IMG/VR virus record: IMGVR_UViG_3300017917_001342
Coordinates: 124,001-188,000 of that record
Direction: 5' to 3' (one strand)
DNA length: 64,000 bases
Shown here: positions 5,519 through 39,225 of the stretch, in pieces
Layout: each line of letters begins with the position of its first letter
How positions within the stretch are numbered: position 1 is the stretch's first letter
Notes under the pieces: generated by a model
Seen by the model: only the letters and a program-made list of their open reading frames with translations
What the model was told of the DNA's origin: nothing
Databases searched by the model: none
Position numbers and translations under genes: made by a program

Positions 5519-5593
5519 GGGTTTGTAGCTCAACGGTAGAGCAGGTGTCTCTAAAACATCGAGGTGTGGGTTCGAATCCCATCTTACCCGCCA
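5519..5593 (+). tRNA. amber suppressor tRNA (CTA)
   Basis: GGTGT-CTCTAAA-ACATC; acceptor has two U.U mismatches; GCCA. Confidence 0.8.
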
Positions 5594-6453: not shown

Positions 6454-6574
6454 TGATTGTTTTGATGATATACTAAGTTGGGTTCCTAGCTTCGCTAGGC
6501 TACAGTGGGTGCCGGCTATCCTGTGAAAATCCGCCGGCACGTTGGATTTTCTTAGTATATCTTCAAAACAATTG
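6454..6574 (+). ncRNA. multibranch RNA on a ~22-bp closing stem
   Basis: TGATTGTTTTGATGATATACTAAG / CTTAGTATATCTTCAAAACAATTG, internal CCTAGC-TTC-GCTAGG and GTGCCGGC stems. Confidence 0.5.
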
Positions 6575-6581
6575 TTTTTAT

Positions 6582-6664
6582 GATACACTTGTGGGCACCC
6601 AAGCGTCTTAGTGCGGTATCTGCGGATTGAAAGGGGAGACGGTTCAAATCCGTCGAAGTGTATC
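6582..6664 (+). ncRNA. tRNA-like core on an extended stem, no CCA
   Basis: GATACACTT/AAGTGTATC closing stem; GACGG-TTCAAAT-CCGTC T arm. Confidence 0.45.
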
Positions 6665-6694
6665 TTAACAACAATTTGCAACAACAGGTGCAAC

Positions 6695-6997
6695 ATGGCA
6701 GAGTTTTGTTTTATTGGTAAAAAATGCGAAGACGCAGACAAAACTATGCTGTTTGCTGCAACTGATGACCTGCAACCAATTCTAGAAACAGACACATCTA
6801 TGGCACACTTGCTTGCACGTATTGGCAAGTTTAGCAGTGTTAAAGATGCTAAACGCAATGGCTGGGATAAACCAATCCCTAAAGGTTGGGCAGAGTTTAC
6901 TGTTGGTAAAGGTGTTAACAGAGTTGACATTTACATTTGGAACCCAACTACAACACTAGCGGAATTTGTCGAACAGGACGCTGCGACTGAGCAATAG
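6695..6997 (+). CDS. hypothetical protein, possibly S4-like RNA-binding
   Basis: LLARIGKFSSVKDAKRNGW resembles the S4-domain helix pattern; AGG RBS. Confidence 0.45.
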   Translation: MAEFCFIGKKCEDADKTMLFAATDDLQPILETDTSMAHLLARIGKFSSVKDAKRNGWDKPIPKGWAEFTVGKGVNRVDIYIWNPTTTLAEFVEQDAATEQ

Positions 6998-7117
6998 GTA
7001 ATCCTAGTAGTAGGTACAACGCTCATGCAAATAGAAGCATTGTATTTGGGTGTTGATCTATTGCTTGACAAGTTTTTTAAACTGTGCTACAACACAATTC
7101 CAATTTAAGAGGACAGT

Positions 7118-7522
7118 GTGATGCTAGAATGTTTGATCATGGGCGATAGTATTGCTGTTGGCATTGCTCAGCAACGCCCCGAATGTGTAGTTGAAGCCAA
7201 AATTGGTATCAACAGCATGGATTATGTTAATGGGTTGTACTTTTTCTATGCAGTACCAGATGCAAAGACTACCGTGATTAGTCTTGGTAGTAACGACTTT
7301 GACAATAGCGAAACTTATCCTGTGCTGTTGACACTGCGTGAAGAAATCAAGGGTAACGTGTTGTGGATTTTGCCTGCACGAAATGACGAGGCACGTAATG
7401 TTATGCTAACCATTGCTCGAGAGCGTGGTGACGCAGTTGCAGATACTCGTGCTTGGCCATTGTCACCAGACGGTGTTCATCCTACCGTAAAAGGATACAA
7501 AGGACTGGCACAGTCTTGGTAA
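7118..7522 (+). CDS. SGNH/GDSL hydrolase
   Basis: GDSIAVG, SLGSND, DGVHPTVKGY blocks. Confidence 0.85.
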   Translation: MMLECLIMGDSIAVGIAQQRPECVVEAKIGINSMDYVNGLYFFYAVPDAKTTVISLGSNDFDNSETYPVLLTLREEIKGNVLWILPARNDEARNVMLTIARERGDAVADTRAWPLSPDGVHPTVKGYKGLAQSW

Positions 7523-7530
7523 AGAATAAT

Positions 7531-7612
7531 GCTCACGTATCCCCCTCCGCTACGAACGGAGAGTCAGGTAATTGGATGGAAGATGGGGGTTCGAGTCCCT
7601 CCGTGAGTACCA
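7531..7612 (+). tRNA. atypical D-armless tRNA-Arg(ACG)
   Basis: GCTCACG/CGTGAGT, CTCCG-CTACGAA-CGGAG directly after a 7-nt linker, 23-nt variable region, T arm, ACCA. Confidence 0.7.
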
Positions 7613-7812
7613 TATAAAGGAGAATGCACTATGCATGGTTATCAATATCTATTGCCAGCATGTTTGATAGCATGGGCTGTTGCTGTTGTCACACTGTTTC
7701 AATGGCCGCCCTGTGCTAAAATGTATTGGGCAACAGATCAACGATTGAATTGTGTATTGACATCCTGGCACGGTCCTGTACTAAACAATGGTACGTGGAC
7801 CTGGTAAATTTT

Positions 7813-7902
7813 GGACGGTTGTTAGAGTGGTTGATTATACGCCCCTGGAAAGGGCGTCTGGATGAAAGTCCAGCGGGGGTTCGAATCCCTCACCGTCCGC
7901 CA
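7813..7902 (+). tRNA. tRNA-Ser(GGA)
   Basis: CGCCC-CTGGAAA-GGGCG, long variable arm. Confidence 0.92.
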
Positions 7903-7924
7903 TTGATTAGTGAAAGGGCATATT

Positions 7925-8116
7925 ATGAAAATCATTGGATTTAAGAAAGGTGCTAACTCAATTAATGCTATAAAATCAGTAAGAAACCATACAGGTATGA
8001 GTCTTGCAGAAAGCAAACGTCTTATTGAAAGTGTACTCGAAGGTAAAATGGTAACACTTGATGAAGACATTGTGCTACGTGAAGAATTAACAGATCAGCT
8101 TTTTATTGTACATTGA
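7925..8116 (+). CDS. ribosomal protein L7/L12 C-terminal-domain-like protein
   Basis: GANSINAIKSVRNHTGMSLAESKRLIES aligns with [28 protein letters not shown] of bL12. Confidence 0.7.
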   Translation: MKIIGFKKGANSINAIKSVRNHTGMSLAESKRLIESVLEGKMVTLDEDIVLREELTDQLFIVH

Positions 8117-8168
8117 TTTTGTTCTTTGAAACGGTTAGCGAAAACAGATAAAACAATTCTGTTTTCAT

Positions 8169-8252
8169 CTATACACAAGGCGTAGGCCGCGCCGATGTTA
8201 TGGAAACAGGTTGGCATCAGCCGACTAGGTGGTTCGATTCCACAGTGTATAG
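8169..8252 (+). ncRNA. tRNA-like core on an extended stem, no CCA
   Basis: CTATACAC/GTGTATAG, D-like GGCG/CGCC, GATGTT/GGCATC arm, GTGG-TTCGATT-CCAC. Confidence 0.5.
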
Positions 8253-8267
8253 TTGAAAACGGAATAT

Positions 8268-8342
8268 TGGGGATTAGCCAAGTGGTAAGGCACCGGACTT
8301 TGATTCCGGCATACGGAGGTTCGACCCCTCCATCCCCAGCCA
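8268..8342 (+). tRNA. tRNA-Gln(TTG)
   Basis: CCGGA-CTTTGAT-TCCGG. Confidence 0.93.
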
Positions 8343-8348
8343 AATACT

Positions 8349-8423
8349 GCGCCGGTAGCTCAGAGGCAGAGCAGGGAGCTCTTAACTCCAAGGTCGGGAT
8401 TTCGAAATTCCCCCGGCACACCA
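8349..8423 (+). tRNA. tRNA-Lys(CTT)
   Basis: GGAG-CTCTTAA-CTCC. Confidence 0.88.
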
Positions 8424-8428
8424 ATCTA

Positions 8429-8539
8429 GGGCTGTTACGTCAAACGGACAACACTGGGGCCTGTGTAATACCAAGACAGTAATGTCCTCTGGAGTCAGAT
8501 AACCTTGGGATATCGGTTCGATCCCGATACAGTCCACCA
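8429..8539 (+). ncRNA. 111-nt CCA-ended tRNA/tmRNA-TLD-like RNA with G3.U70
   Basis: GGGCTGT/ACAGTCC-ACCA, ATCGG-TTCGATC-CCGAT, two internal hairpins. Confidence 0.65.
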
Positions 8540-8696
8540 TTGATAAGCTGTATCTCTAGGGTTAGAGAGAACAGGGCAGAGTGGGTGAAGCGGGGTTCGA
8601 GTCCCCAAACGATGAGGTTCGACTCCAAATCGTGCAGGTGCAATAGACCGCTGTTTTGATCACTAAATATTCCTGTTAACAACAGGAGTGTTTAAC

Positions 8697-8894
8697 ATGG
8701 AGTTTCTAAAAGGTTATAAAACTGTAATTTTTAACGTATTAGTATTAATTGCAGGGCTAGCACAAATAACAGATCTTGTTCAATTAGTTGCACCAGAATA
8801 TCTGCCAGCAGTAACGTTAGCAGTTGCAGTTGCAAATCTAATACTGCGTTGGGCAACTGATACTGGAATTTTTAAAACTACACCAACTGTGTGA
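8697..8894 (+). CDS. small two-TM holin-like protein
   Basis: KGYKTVIFN...ANLILRWATDT, AGGAG RBS, TAAATA upstream. Confidence 0.55.
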   Translation: MEFLKGYKTVIFNVLVLIAGLAQITDLVQLVAPEYLPAVTLAVAVANLILRWATDTGIFKTTPTV

Positions 8895-9082
8895 TTTAGA
8901 AGGTAAGAACAAAAGGGTAGCGGGCCGTGTGCCTACAGAGATGATGCTCTGCCGAGTAGGGACTACTGAAAGCTGTTTTAAGGTGTCAGCGACAAACCTT
9001 ATTTTTTTACAAAATCATCATTGACAAGTTAGATCAACTAGTATAGTTACAGTGTTGTAGAAACACACTAGGAGATACTACA

Positions 9083-9430
9083 ATGCCTTGCAGAGTTGAC
9101 GAAGACTGGGACACTACGCCGCGCCGCGTTGAACGTCACGGGATGGAACTTGCAGACTTTGAAGCTGCACTGTGCGGCGTTTTTACTGCCATTGAGCGGT
9201 GGGGTAATGATACTACCATTGAAGGTCGACTTAAACAGATGCTCGACAAAGTTGATTGGGATGAAGCTGGCGTCCGGCGCAAGACTGTTGAGACCTGGTG
9301 GAAAAAGCATAAAAAAGAAGACGAAGAACGCCGCGTTCGCGAAGCTGCTGCTCGTCGCAAAGAAGAACTCAAAGCTGCTGCAATCAGCAAGCTTTCTATG
9401 GAAGAACGTGCGGCGCTTGGTCTGCTGTAA
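9083..9430 (+). CDS. hypothetical protein with charged C-terminal helix
   Basis: TTGACA promoter and AGGAG RBS upstream. Confidence 0.7.
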   Translation: MPCRVDEDWDTTPRRVERHGMELADFEAALCGVFTAIERWGNDTTIEGRLKQMLDKVDWDEAGVRRKTVETWWKKHKKEDEERRVREAAARRKEELKAAAISKLSMEERAALGLL

Positions 9431-9457
9431 TAAAAACAATATAAGAAAGGTAGACGC

Positions 9458-9973
9458 ATGAAATACTTGGCATTTTTAGACATAGATGGCGTGTTTACGT
9501 CCAACCGTGTGCAATATGCGTCTGCCAATCCCAACGATATGTGGAATAAGTTTGATCCTATTGCAGTAGACTTTATGAACAAGCTTCACGATCGCGTAGA
9601 CGATTTGCATTTTGTTCTGATCTCTACATGGAAAGAATATCTGCGCGAAGCCGATGAGCAAACGTCACATTGGATAATTGCTGCATTTCGTAACGCAGGC
9701 TTCCGCGGCGAGTTTGCTTCGCCGTGGAAAACTAACCCAGAAAACTTCCCACGTTTTTATGAGCGTGGTATGACTCGTGCAAATGAAATCAAAGAATATC
9801 TTGAAGTCTATGCACCTAGTAACAAAGACTACATTATCTTTGATGATAATGATTACGGGTTTGAAAAGGTACTCGGTAAAAAACGTTGGGTGCATACAGA
9901 CCATGAAAACGGCATCCTTTGGAAACATCAACAACATGCAATGAGCATTGTTGGCCAGTGGGATCCAAAATAA
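9458..9973 (+). CDS. HAD-superfamily phosphatase (Swiss-army-knife RNA-repair type, HAD_SAK_2-like)
   Basis: FLDIDGV, LISTWK, YIIFDD motifs. Confidence 0.75.
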   Translation: MKYLAFLDIDGVFTSNRVQYASANPNDMWNKFDPIAVDFMNKLHDRVDDLHFVLISTWKEYLREADEQTSHWIIAAFRNAGFRGEFASPWKTNPENFPRFYERGMTRANEIKEYLEVYAPSNKDYIIFDDNDYGFEKVLGKKRWVHTDHENGILWKHQQHAMSIVGQWDPK

Positions 9974-9976
9974 TCT

Positions 9977-10050
9977 GCTCTAATGGTGTAGTGATAACGC
10001 AGGTCCTTGGTACGGACCAATCTCAGGTTTGATTCCTGGTTAGAGCACCA
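9977..10050 (+). tRNA. tRNA-Thr(GGT)
   Basis: GGTCC-TTGGTAC-GGACC, ACCA. Confidence 0.85.
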
Positions 10051-10055
10051 AAATA

Positions 10056-10270
10056 AAGTATCAGAAGGTTGGCTTAGAAGCAGCACATCCTTTAAAGAGT
10101 GGAACGAAGTACCACAGGAGCGAAAGATGCTATGTCGTACTGCATTGCAAGTGGCATAGTAAGATAGCTAAGTGGGAAAATACGGATAGCAACAGAGTCC
10201 CCAGAGAATACAATGGTATTACAACTGTAAGGCAACTGTTTTCCTTTGGCGTAACAGCACACTGATACTT
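10056..10270 (+). ncRNA. 23S rRNA H42-H44 (L11/GTPase-associated centre) mimic with ~150-nt insert
   Basis: AAGTATCAG/CTGATACTT stem enclosing AAGGTTGGCTTAGAAGCAGCACATCCTTTAAAGAGT ... GCGTAACAGCACA. Confidence 0.75.
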
Positions 10271-10566
10271 AGAATTCGAACGTCGTAAAGGGCATTGATG
10301 TGAAGCTGTAAACTCAGTTTAACAAGCGAAGAACCTATGGACGGTGGCATTGGTCTATGACTTGGCCATGAATGAGATCTTGAAAAATTAGATACTGGGA
10401 ACCTTTTAAGCTAACCGGGAGCCGCTATCATTCACGTTCGATTATAAGAATGCTCCTTGCTGTGTTCTGCACATTTCACGGCGAGGGAAGGGGGACAGTG
10501 CAGGTCCCCCGAGAGATTTGACAAACCGTACTGTTTACAGTAATCTATAAAAAAGATAGGCACAAT

Positions 10567-11016
10567 ATGAAGATCGAATATCGCAAAGGCAACCTGTTTG
10601 ATACCGACATACTGCACATTGTACACGGTTGCAATGCACAGGGTGTAATGGGATCCGGTGTTGCTAAAATTGTCAAAGAACAGTACTTCGATGCATTTAA
10701 GTTCTATGCAGAACAGTATGATGAATCAGGTCTTAAACTAGGCGATGTTCAGTTTGTACCATCTAACGGTAAAGTAATTGTCAACGCTATTACTCAAGAA
10801 AATTTCGGTCGCGATGGTAAACGCTATGTCGACTATAATGCGATTACCGCTGCAATGACTACAATCAATCGCGTATTAAAACTCGGTGGATACACAGAAG
10901 TTGCTATGCCACAAATTGGTGCCGGTTTAGGCGGCGGCGATTGGGATAATGTTATTTCAGGATTAATTGAATACGCAATGACTGATGTTAAACCTGTGGT
11001 TTATGTTTTAGAATAA
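10567..11016 (+). CDS. macro domain protein (ADP-ribose processing)
   Basis: KGNLF, HGCNAQGVMGSGVA, MPQIGAGLGGGDW. Confidence 0.9.
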   Translation: MKIEYRKGNLFDTDILHIVHGCNAQGVMGSGVAKIVKEQYFDAFKFYAEQYDESGLKLGDVQFVPSNGKVIVNAITQENFGRDGKRYVDYNAITAAMTTINRVLKLGGYTEVAMPQIGAGLGGGDWDNVISGLIEYAMTDVKPVVYVLE

Positions 11017-11072
11017 ACTATACAAACAATCATATAGATCATAAAATGTGTTAGACTTATGGAGTTTAACAC

Positions 11073-12017
11073 ATGGCTAGTTTACTAGACCCTGCAATAT
11101 TGTTTTTTATATTTGGTATTTTTGCGGGTTTGATTAAATCAAATCTAGCCATACCAGAACAGATTTCTAAATTTCTATCACTGTATTTGCTAATGGCATT
11201 AGGCCTTAAAGGTGGTTTTGCATTAGCTGCAAATGGCTTTACAGGCGAAATTGCATCGGTAATAGCAATAGGTTTACTATTAGCATTTGCTGTACCTATA
11301 TTAGGATATGCTGTGCTACGAACCAAATTAAATGGTTTTGACGCCGCAGCAGTTGCAGCAACTTACGGTTCAGTAAGTGCCGTCACATTTGTTACTGCAA
11401 CTCAATACTTGTCTATGGTTAACGTAGAATATGGCAGTTACATGGCAGCAGTAATGGCACTGATGGAATCACCTGCTATCATCATGGCTGTGGCATTAGC
11501 AGCGTATATCAGAGCAAGTAAGAGCGTTAGCATTAAACATGTATTGCACGAAAGCTTTACAGATGGTGCTCACATATTGCTGTTAGCAGCATTGGCTATT
11601 GGTTTTGTAACAGGTGCTAGTGGCGAAACAGTAATGAAACCATTTGTTGGTGACCTATTCAAAGGGCTGTTGGCATTCTTCCTGTTAGACATGGGACTAC
11701 AAGTTGCCAAGCGCATACCAGAACTTAGAGATAAAAGCATTGCATTGATAGTATATGCTGTTGCGTCTCCTATAGTTCATAGTATACTTGCATTAACACT
11801 GGCAGTGCTGTTTGGTGTATCTGTAGGCAACGCAATACTGTTAATGGTACTTGCTGCTAGTGCAAGTTACATTGCAGTACCAGCCGTATTAAAATTTGCC
11901 ATACCAGAAGCTAACCCTAGTGTTTACTTTGGATTGAGTTTAGGTATTACGTTCCCCTTTAACGTGCTAATAGGTATACCGTTGTATCATTGGCTAGCAT
12001 CATTAGTGATTGGATAA
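11073..12017 (+). CDS. sbtA: sodium-dependent bicarbonate transport family permease
   Basis: LLDPAILFF...SLYLLMALGLKGG, AATYGSVSAVTF, ASASYIAVPA. Confidence 0.85.
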   Translation: MASLLDPAILFFIFGIFAGLIKSNLAIPEQISKFLSLYLLMALGLKGGFALAANGFTGEIASVIAIGLLLAFAVPILGYAVLRTKLNGFDAAAVAATYGSVSAVTFVTATQYLSMVNVEYGSYMAAVMALMESPAIIMAVALAAYIRASKSVSIKHVLHESFTDGAHILLLAALAIGFVTGASGETVMKPFVGDLFKGLLAFFLLDMGLQVAKRIPELRDKSIALIVYAVASPIVHSILALTLAVLFGVSVGNAILLMVLAASASYIAVPAVLKFAIPEANPSVYFGLSLGITFPFNVLIGIPLYHWLASLVIG

Positions 12018-29039: not shown

Positions 29040-29920
29040 CACGATATTAACGTTGTGAAACGTGGATGTTGTGTTTACGCATTGGGGGTTTAGCCTCAAC
29101 AGGATAAGTGCAGTGATGCACCCAAAGCTAGAAAGCCTACATACTAGCGCCAGCAGTGGTCCATCTAAACAAGCCTGAACTAGACTTGACTCGGGTTAAA
29201 CCGAAAGCAAGTCCCGTCCGTAGAAAGGCGGTAGGCAGTAAGTTAGGAATAGTGTCCGAAAGGATAGTTGCAGAGCCAGTCGGTGAGCGATAAGAGGGTT
29301 GGCGCCCAAACACTGTTCAGCCAAACTAACGAATGCTGAAAGTTAACAGGTAGGTACAGAGTCTGAGCCCGCAAGCAAAGGCATGGTACCATTTCGAGAG
29401 TGGAAGGGTTAGGCCCCGGATACTTGAAGAAACACTGATTAGTCCGCAAGACGAAAGGTATGAGGTGTGCTGTATTGGGTATGTCAAAAGCATATTCAGC
29501 AGCCGAGGTAGCACATCTCGGATAGGTTGCAAAATCAGCTAATGGTAAGCTAATTCCCTTCTAAGGAATCGATTGCAGGTTCAACTCCTGTTTTTGAAAA
29601 ATGCAAAGTCTACCTCGGTATGTAGTGTAAGGTGTCAAATACTTGAGGCGCAAGCCAATCAAGTTCAACAAAGCTCGCAAGGCAGCGTTGATTTGTGCTA
29701 GAAGTTTCGTAGCCCGCAAGGCTTAATGGTCCGCAAGATCAACGGAAAACAAGGTGCAGAATAGCTACATACGACGAGTCTACTGCCTGACTCTAAAAAC
29801 GGCGACACTGTTAATGGACTAGGTTACCGCAAGGGACTTAGTGGATGTCGGAAGAAAGCGGCTCGCAAGGCTGGCAATAATGTCCGAAGCGTTAACATCG
29901 AACGTGTAATCTCAGCGTTT
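29040..29920 (+). ncRNA. GOLLD-like large ncRNA (5' boundary uncertain)
   Basis: ~0.9 kb without credible ORF, at least 9 GCAA/GAAA-capped hairpins, GGTAGGTAC..GAGTCTGAG, GAGGTAGCACATCTC and terminal GTAATCTCAG blocks recalled from GOLLD; tRNA-cluster context. Confidence 0.6.
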
Positions 29921-38965: not shown

Positions 38966-39225
38966 CTGTTGCATTTTTAACTGCACTGTGCTATAGTGAG
39001 TTATTGATTATGCGAAAAAAGGTTCGTAGTAGCGGCTAGTAATCCAGGAACCTTGCGGCAAATAAGGTGAGAACGCCCGCCTCACACACCAGCAATGGTA
39101 AAGTAGCGAAAGCGAAGAGATGTAGGAATCTTGTCTATATGGCAAGTTGAAAACAGGGACCCTACTATTTGCCAATACCCATTAAGATCGTCTGTAGGCT
39201 AGCCAAATTTTTAAAAAGGTGTGTT

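Follow-up and report, generated by a model that had tools for sequence, protein, structure and literature searches.

The stretch of DNA analyzed here (hereafter the window) comprises 64,000 nucleotides, corresponding to bases 124001–188000 of a virus record of 518,643 bp that carries direct terminal repeats. The phage, which is repeatedly found in pond and freshwater metagenomes, has a genome with a GC content of 40.7% and 55 tRNA genes, 50 of which are concentrated within approximately 40 kb. Inside this tRNA array lies a short gene for a 63-residue protein, flanked by tRNA genes on both sides (Table 1). The island around it consists of translation and RNA-repair functions interleaved with tRNAs, and in close relatives of the phage it contains YqeY, PTH2, HAD_SAK_2, Macro, ADP-ribosylglycohydrolase, and an AAA_33/Zeta-like kinase. 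A tRNA with the anticodon CUA at 5519–5593 is classified as tRNA-Pyl by ARAGORN and is of the amber-suppressor type; the gene for the 63-residue protein terminates with TGA and has no in-frame TAG. The same tRNA-rich region also harbors a GOLLD RNA (29462–29918, 234 bits) with an embedded tRNA (29528–29599) and a skipping-rope RNA (39057–39173, 46.9 bits). A suspected tRNA-like sequence at 8180–8260 was dropped, as it had no Rfam match at E ≤ 1.

Table 1. Features at and around the gene for the 63-residue protein, in window coordinates.
Feature	Position	Strand	Remarks
Weak GDSL-like hydrolase	7118–7522		
tRNA-Ser(GGA)	7813–7902	+	Upstream flank; ends 22 nt before the start codon
Shine-Dalgarno-like GAAAGGG	7912–7918	+	Purine-rich; 6 nt 5' of the ATG; read from the sequence
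CDS, 63-aa single-domain bL12 C-terminal-domain homologue	7925–8116	+	ATG at 7925; TGA stop at 8114–8116
tRNA-Gln(UUG)	8268–8342	+	Downstream flank; 151 nt past the stop codon
HAD_SAK_2 (RNA-repair "Swiss army knife" HAD domain)	9458–9973		
tRNA-Thr	9977–10050		
23S helix-43/GTPase-centre look-alike RNA, core	10057–10109	+	21 nt past tRNA-Thr
Macro domain gene	10567–11016		

The ORF finder also listed a longer version of the gene with a GTG at 7910. This codon was rejected as the start, because each of the eight close homologues has a length of exactly 63 aa and begins with M-x-I-I-G. The orthologues carry AAGGAG or AGAGGAG at the position equivalent to the GAAAGGG motif of the window. These orthologues are located on a 277,846-bp contig and on two near-identical contigs of 381,620 and 381,886 bp, and their protein is 79% identical to that of the window. 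Between orthologues the synonymous sites are saturated (pS 0.76–0.80), pN is low (0.16–0.21), and the length is invariant, which together indicate purifying selection on the protein. A scan of 7000–9200 revealed neither a sigma-70-like promoter nor an intrinsic terminator above shuffle expectation. Two RNA-library runs contain exact contigs for neighboring phage segments, with RNA-seq of a freshwater metagenome as their source: the contig for 8665–8922 spans a 68-aa membrane-like ORF (8688–8894), and the contig for 9874–10112 spans tRNA-Thr and the first ~60 nt of the rRNA-like RNA listed in Table 1. Both fit with transcription of these segments without proving it. None of the contigs covers 7925–8116, and contigs of this kind cannot show an absence of expression. 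A megablast search with positions 6500–11500 against 50,697 GenBank phage records gave no match, and neither did tblastn of the 63-aa protein against 50,697 such records.

The 63-residue, soluble protein is a divergent homologue of the C-terminal domain (CTD) of ribosomal protein bL12 and comprises nothing else. At the sequence level, PF00542 matches residues 8–37 only (E = 9.7e-6, 26.3 bits; profile positions 8–37 of 67), so that the gathering cut-off (25.9 bits) is only marginally exceeded; when the genome was scanned in six frames with this profile, the score was 25.0 bits. A phmmer search against the PDB retrieved the E. coli L7/L12 CTD with an E-value of about 1e-3, the phage side of the alignment being GANSINAIKSVRNHTGMSLAESKRLIES. 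The structure predicted by AF2 from a nine-sequence alignment has a pLDDT of 95.9 and a b-a-a-b-a-b topology, composed of a strand (2–6), two helices (12–23 and 27–38), a short strand (43–44), a third helix (49–57), and a final strand (60–62). In Foldseek all top matches are bL12 CTDs (probability 0.97–0.99, 32–33% identity over the full length), with ClpS next in the list. VIA-align superimposed the model on the E. coli bL12 CTD 8phj_W over 57 residues with a Z-score of 8.5, an rmsd of 1.7 Å, and 32% identity, and on the bL12 CTD 1ctf with a Z-score of 8.1. An ESM Atlas feature search with the protein reached 0.83 at best, which is under the useful level. ClpS, the N-degron adaptor of ClpAP, resembles the phage protein in its overall fold (Z 6.4–7.9), but a reading as a ClpS-like adaptor was rejected on the basis of sequence: the identity in the structural alignment is 5–10%, Pfam ClpS does not match at E ≤ 1, and the sequence motifs of the phage protein are those of bL12.

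The initial annotation, made from the sequence alone, had described this product as a stand-alone bL12 CTD without the N-terminal, L10-binding dimerization domain, and it was right on the fold as well as on the missing part. Scored with TIGR00855, the model of full-length bL12, the protein reaches 20.3 bits where 84.4 would be required, with only positions 66–95 of the model aligned, and according to the AF2 model all 63 residues belong to the CTD, so that both the N-terminal dimerization/uL10-binding domain and the flexible hinge are absent. As it is the N-terminal domain of bL12 that binds the uL10 helix (PMC6753160), canonical mounting on the ribosomal stalk is excluded. Compared with bacterial bL12 CTDs (PF00542, 1ctf), the phage protein shares the fold (Z 8.1–8.5, rmsd 1.7–1.8 Å), 32–33% identity over 57 residues, the GAN..I.AIK.VR..TG..L.E.K.L.E motif of helices 4–5, and the domain end L-x-E-x-G-x-x-V. 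It differs in the missing N-terminal parts, in a third helix shorter by about five residues, and in the replacements of K65 and G79 by serine; moreover, the gene resides in a tRNA array and not in an rplJL operon. We are thus highly confident that 7925–8116 is a real gene and that its assignment to the bL12 CTD, fold included, is correct.

An exhaustive profile search of 1.84 billion representatives yielded 533 proteins at E ≤ 1e-3. Among the top 150 of these, at least 25 clusters (50% identity) of 63–65 aa match end to end; they are 32–62% identical to the window protein and all of them stem from metagenomes. PF00542 at E ≤ 0.01 recognizes only 8 of 32 members of this family, but when a profile of the 63-aa family is searched against the PDB, bL12 is still ranked first (E = 3.6e-3). 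The family signature consists of G5, K21-H22-T23, G40, D48-[FW]-V-L-R-E-D-L-E, and F60. In 24 representatives G5, K21, H22, G40, D48, L51, E53, D/E54, L55, and F60 are invariant or nearly so, with K21 kept in 22, K/R7 and E53 in 23, and H22 in all 24. The alignment of the diverse family does not contain any conserved stretch of 7–10 columns; with a different alignment, a search for related loci yielded one locus only. Many other hits of the search (among them P0010, P0012, P0016, P0024, and P0123) carry 3–20 tandem repeats of the bL12 CTD in proteins of up to 1,633 aa, or fusions of this domain to LRV or to Imm35, an immunity domain of polymorphic toxins. Reuse of the domain outside ribosomes is therefore widespread, and these tandem and fused proteins represent a large, uncharacterised non-ribosomal use of it.

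The genomic surroundings of the 63-aa family are constant in one respect. In all 11 contexts (the window, L002/L003, L004, L144–L147, and L158–L161), which include proteins down to 32% identity, the nearest tRNA gene is 3–417 nt away. Frequently the gene begins 16–22 nt downstream of a tRNA, and the flanking tRNAs vary among the contexts. By comparison, only 5.6% of the bases in the genome of the window are no more than 420 nt away from a tRNA, and 1.3% are no more than 25 nt away. No neighboring protein gene was found to be conserved across the contexts. A second 63-aa ORF in L146 (2363–2554) is not a homologue. Thus, phages maintain the family gene within arrays of tRNA genes. This constant context was previously undescribed, and the definition of the family is also new.

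On bL12, the GTPase-binding site is formed by helices 4–5 (PMC5887453, PMC6753160), which expose a conserved, positively charged face (PMC6753160), and EF-G is contacted by V66–V68, K70, L80, and E82 (PMC5887453). The positions of the phage protein that match the factor-contacting residues are 13–17, 20, 27, and 29. In the window copy they are occupied by I13, N14, A15, I16, K17, R20, L27, and E29, so that most of the contacts are kept, and according to the phmmer alignment the equivalents of E. coli I69, K70, R73, L80, E82, and K84 are retained. A generally basic face formed by helices 1 and 2 is common to the family, but the individual contacts are not conserved: in the 24 representatives the contact columns have entropies of 1.35–3.3 bits, and positions 13, 14, 16, 17, 20, and 27 (2.5–3.3 bits) are among the most variable columns of the entire alignment. 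Therefore, the canonical interface is plausible for the window copy, but it is not what selection on the family preserves. The family-specific invariants, among them K21-H22 and D48, set the phage proteins apart from bL12. H22, D48, L51, and L55 as well as the almost invariant E53 are all located away from the bL12 contact positions; they may have a structural role or point to a different partner.

Taking these observations together, we consider it somewhat probable that the gene encodes a stalk head of the tRNA array that acts in trans and independently of the nearby rRNA-like RNA, and this is the best overall explanation we can offer. The mRNA would be cut from the tRNA polycistron by RNase P/Z processing, and the protein would then act as an unanchored "stalk head." Its basic helix-1/helix-2 face could engage the site on host EF-Tu, EF-G, IF2, and RF3 that otherwise meets bL12, and in this way the protein might tune or shield the use of these factors while the phage tRNAs flood the cell. 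The specific part of this proposal, that translational GTPases are bound by the protein as a modulator or shield in trans, is put forward tentatively. In a co-fold with residues 1–295 of E. coli EF-G the interface reached an ipSAE of 0.38, compared with 0.01 for the best control, with at least 94% of contacts agreeing between runs and a partner pLDDT of at least 90. The tool rates the result of this structure prediction, which the initial annotation had suggested, as "weak support." Since bL12–EF-G complexes have already been solved, the score may stem from structures of the family that the predictor had learned, and we do not count it as a demonstration of binding. Contacts between the CTD and the factors are weak, and a free domain competes with the 4–6 anchored copies on each ribosome. 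The phage genome encodes no translational GTPase, uL10, or uL11. Moreover, an interface with the highly conserved GTPases should itself be conserved, and for this reason the variability of the contact columns counts against GTPase binding, as do the position of the invariant residues away from these columns and the low fraction of family members that reach PF00542.

An even more specific version appears unlikely, in which the family would be a dedicated accessory of tRNA arrays, namely a ribosome-free stalk head that is expressed together with the phage tRNAs and captures, away from the ribosome, EF-Tu or another client of the stalk. If it were true, the captured clients could be channeled to phage-favored decoding or hidden from abortive-infection enzymes of the host, and this would constitute a new viral way to manipulate the GTPase cycle of translation.

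Alternatively, only the fold might have been retained. According to this explanation, which we regard as somewhat unlikely, the bL12-CTD scaffold was exapted for a partner other than translational GTPases, for instance a protein from the phage or its host that takes part in tRNA maturation or repair, or a ribosomal site such as uL11. Binding would be mediated by the pole formed by K21-H22-T23, G40, and D48 together with the acidic helix 3 (R52-E53-D54-x-E56-D57). The conservation pattern is in line with such a shift, as the contact positions vary whereas H22, D48, E53, and D/E54 show little or no variation, unlike in bL12, and most members are no longer recognized by PF00542. So are the reuse of the domain outside ribosomes in 3–20 tandem copies and in LRV or Imm35 fusions, the occurrence of bL12 CTDs inside large phage proteins (PMC6375957), and the tRNA-array context in 11 of 11 cases. 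The residues in question may, however, be conserved for purely structural reasons such as the capping of the shortened helix 3; furthermore, no conserved neighboring protein gene indicates a partner, and the window copy is still bL12-like on its factor face.

A role in counter-defense seems improbable. Here the free stalk head would serve as a decoy that soaks up host effectors docking on the bL12 CTD, such as Cami1, a CARF-RelE nuclease that belongs to type III CRISPR systems, or it would shield EF-Tu from abortive-infection enzymes. The best structural match is indeed the bL12 CTD bound in the Cami1–ribosome complex 8phj, but this match shows only that the fold is that of bL12. The variability of the helix-1 face would fit an arms race with variable partners, and the island includes genes of an RNA-repair/counter-defense type (HAD_SAK_2, Macro, ADP-ribosylglycohydrolase, AAA_33/Zeta-like kinase, PTH2). 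A decoy would, however, face a stoichiometric problem against the abundant ribosomal bL12.

The initial annotation had gone further and connected the protein to an RNA copy of the GTPase-centre site about 2 kb away, proposing that both halves of the factor-binding centre are imitated. The RNA itself exists. Its core begins 1.94 kb downstream of the protein gene on the same strand, in the gap between tRNA-Thr and the Macro domain gene (10051–10566), and resembles helix 43 of 23S rRNA, the uL11/thiostrepton site. Positions 10062–10100 are 87–92% identical to E. coli 23S rRNA (7 places per genome), the matching segment being annotated as "23S ribosomal RNA" at about position 1049–1083 of a partial record. 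The read sets also contain contigs of genuine 23S rRNA, which match 10066–10101 and then continue as rRNA. Based on this identity and on these contigs, the likeness to rRNA is real. The rRNA-like RNA is not represented by a family in Rfam 15, which (E ≤ 10) detected only tRNAs in 9900–10600 and at 12 other loci of the motif. IMG/VR was scanned with a 14-mer, and after filtering 23 distinct further copies remained (at loci that include L025, L027, L034, L036, L064, L067, L093, and L115), which share GG.GU.GGCUUAGAAGCAGCCAUC.UUUAAAGAGU. Among the copies the pair 1058:1080 covaries as U-A, G-C, or A-U. In the window copy the 3' strand contains an additional A (GCAGC-A-CAUCC), and the segments 3' of AAAGAGU differ among phages. 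Like the protein gene, this RNA is associated with tRNAs: 15 of the 23 copies have a tRNA no more than 500 nt away, compared with 18 of 90 control loci, and in 8 of the 23 the motif begins 18–23 nt past a tRNA 3' end (21 nt in the window). Folding of 10051–10280 gave a minimum free energy of −53.8 kcal/mol that cannot be distinguished from shuffles (z = −1.16), and hence the boundaries initially given for the RNA, 10056–10270, find no support in folding energy alone. Altogether, this phage RNA seems to be both widespread and uncatalogued; it is more remarkable than the 63-aa protein and deserves study in its own right.

The proposed pairing of the two elements, in contrast, did not stand. The profile of the 63-aa family matched none of the 27 RNA-bearing viral records, 7 of which are complete. 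PF00542 was found in two of the 27, one of them a provirus with a host-like full bL12, and in none of the seven complete records. Conversely, a complete 382-kb relative (G028) carries an orthologue of the protein (105 bits), but its best match to the RNA motif reached only 13.9 bits (E about 1), compared with 62.9 bits in the genome of the window; likewise, no helix-43-like RNA was detected within 10 kb on either side of the gene in the relatives L002–L004. The initial annotation had itself named a lack of co-occurrence across phages as an argument against its idea, and co-occurrence is missing in both directions. Protein gene and RNA both are residents of tRNA arrays, which explains their proximity, and with the tRNA genes concentrated as described above a distance of 2 kb needs no functional link. 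We therefore conclude with high confidence that the protein is independent of the helix-43-like RNA and not its functional partner. A two-part imitation of the GTPase-associated centre could still invoke the presence of both elements 1.94 kb apart on one strand and the RNA-library contig that covers tRNA-Thr and the start of the RNA. On the ribosome, however, helix 43 is bound by uL11 and not by the bL12 CTD, and the phage lacks uL11 as well as uL10, so that together with the failing co-occurrence this reading becomes very improbable. The negative result matters, as the idea that both halves are imitated is attractive but unsupported by co-occurrence.

The least probable reading is that the 63-aa protein replaces host bL12 on the ribosome, as has been proposed generally for phage ribosomal proteins: one peptide of a phage bL12-domain protein was detected in 70S fractions (Mizuno et al., PMC6375957), but a tagged phage bL12 was unusable for the purification of ribosomes (PMC6375957), and the N-terminal domain and hinge that bind the uL10 helix (PMC6753160) are absent. 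Weighing the evidence as a whole, we would rank modulation of translational GTPases before the exapted fold, the decoy, the two-part imitation, and the replacement of bL12, in this order.

As the initial annotation had noted, bL12-like genes of phages were known before (PMC6375957, PMC7162821). Phage proteins with bL12 domains, some of which consist entirely of the domain, were described by Mizuno et al. (2019; PMC6375957), and Al-Shayeb et al. (2020; PMC7162821) list L7/L12 genes for huge phages. In addition, further phage proteins are named "bL12 C-terminal domain-containing" in BFVD, and one of them, from Vibrio phage Vp_R1, has 64 aa. The gene of the window joins these already known stand-alone phage bL12 domains: as in the examples of Mizuno et al., a PF00542-type domain spans the whole small protein, here residues 1–63, and the canonical N-terminal domain is lacking. 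The published stand-alone examples are, however, 92–107 aa long and belong to phages of less than 80 kb, whereas the window protein has 63 aa and is encoded by a 518-kb phage, and it further differs by its metagenome-only family and the constant tRNA-array context. Copies of ribosomal proteins are known from phages, but none of the bL12 type has a demonstrated function. The minimal, well-folded case of 63 residues, combined with the family alignment and the tRNA-array signature, makes this question testable by simple assays.

Outside the window, the same phage encodes another protein with a bL12 CTD, 129 aa in length, on the minus strand at approximately 9777–10166 of G000:C1 (L011:1498–1887). 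It scores 36.8 bits with PF00542 and is 44% identical to the 63-aa protein over 36 residues that correspond to helices 1–2. In this protein, a three-helix N-terminal domain is fused to the CTD without a hinge (pLDDT 85.6). Unlike the 63-aa gene, it adjoins clamp-loader-like genes outside the tRNA array. The protein forms a family of its own, with members of ~130 aa, and is also conserved in the relative G028.
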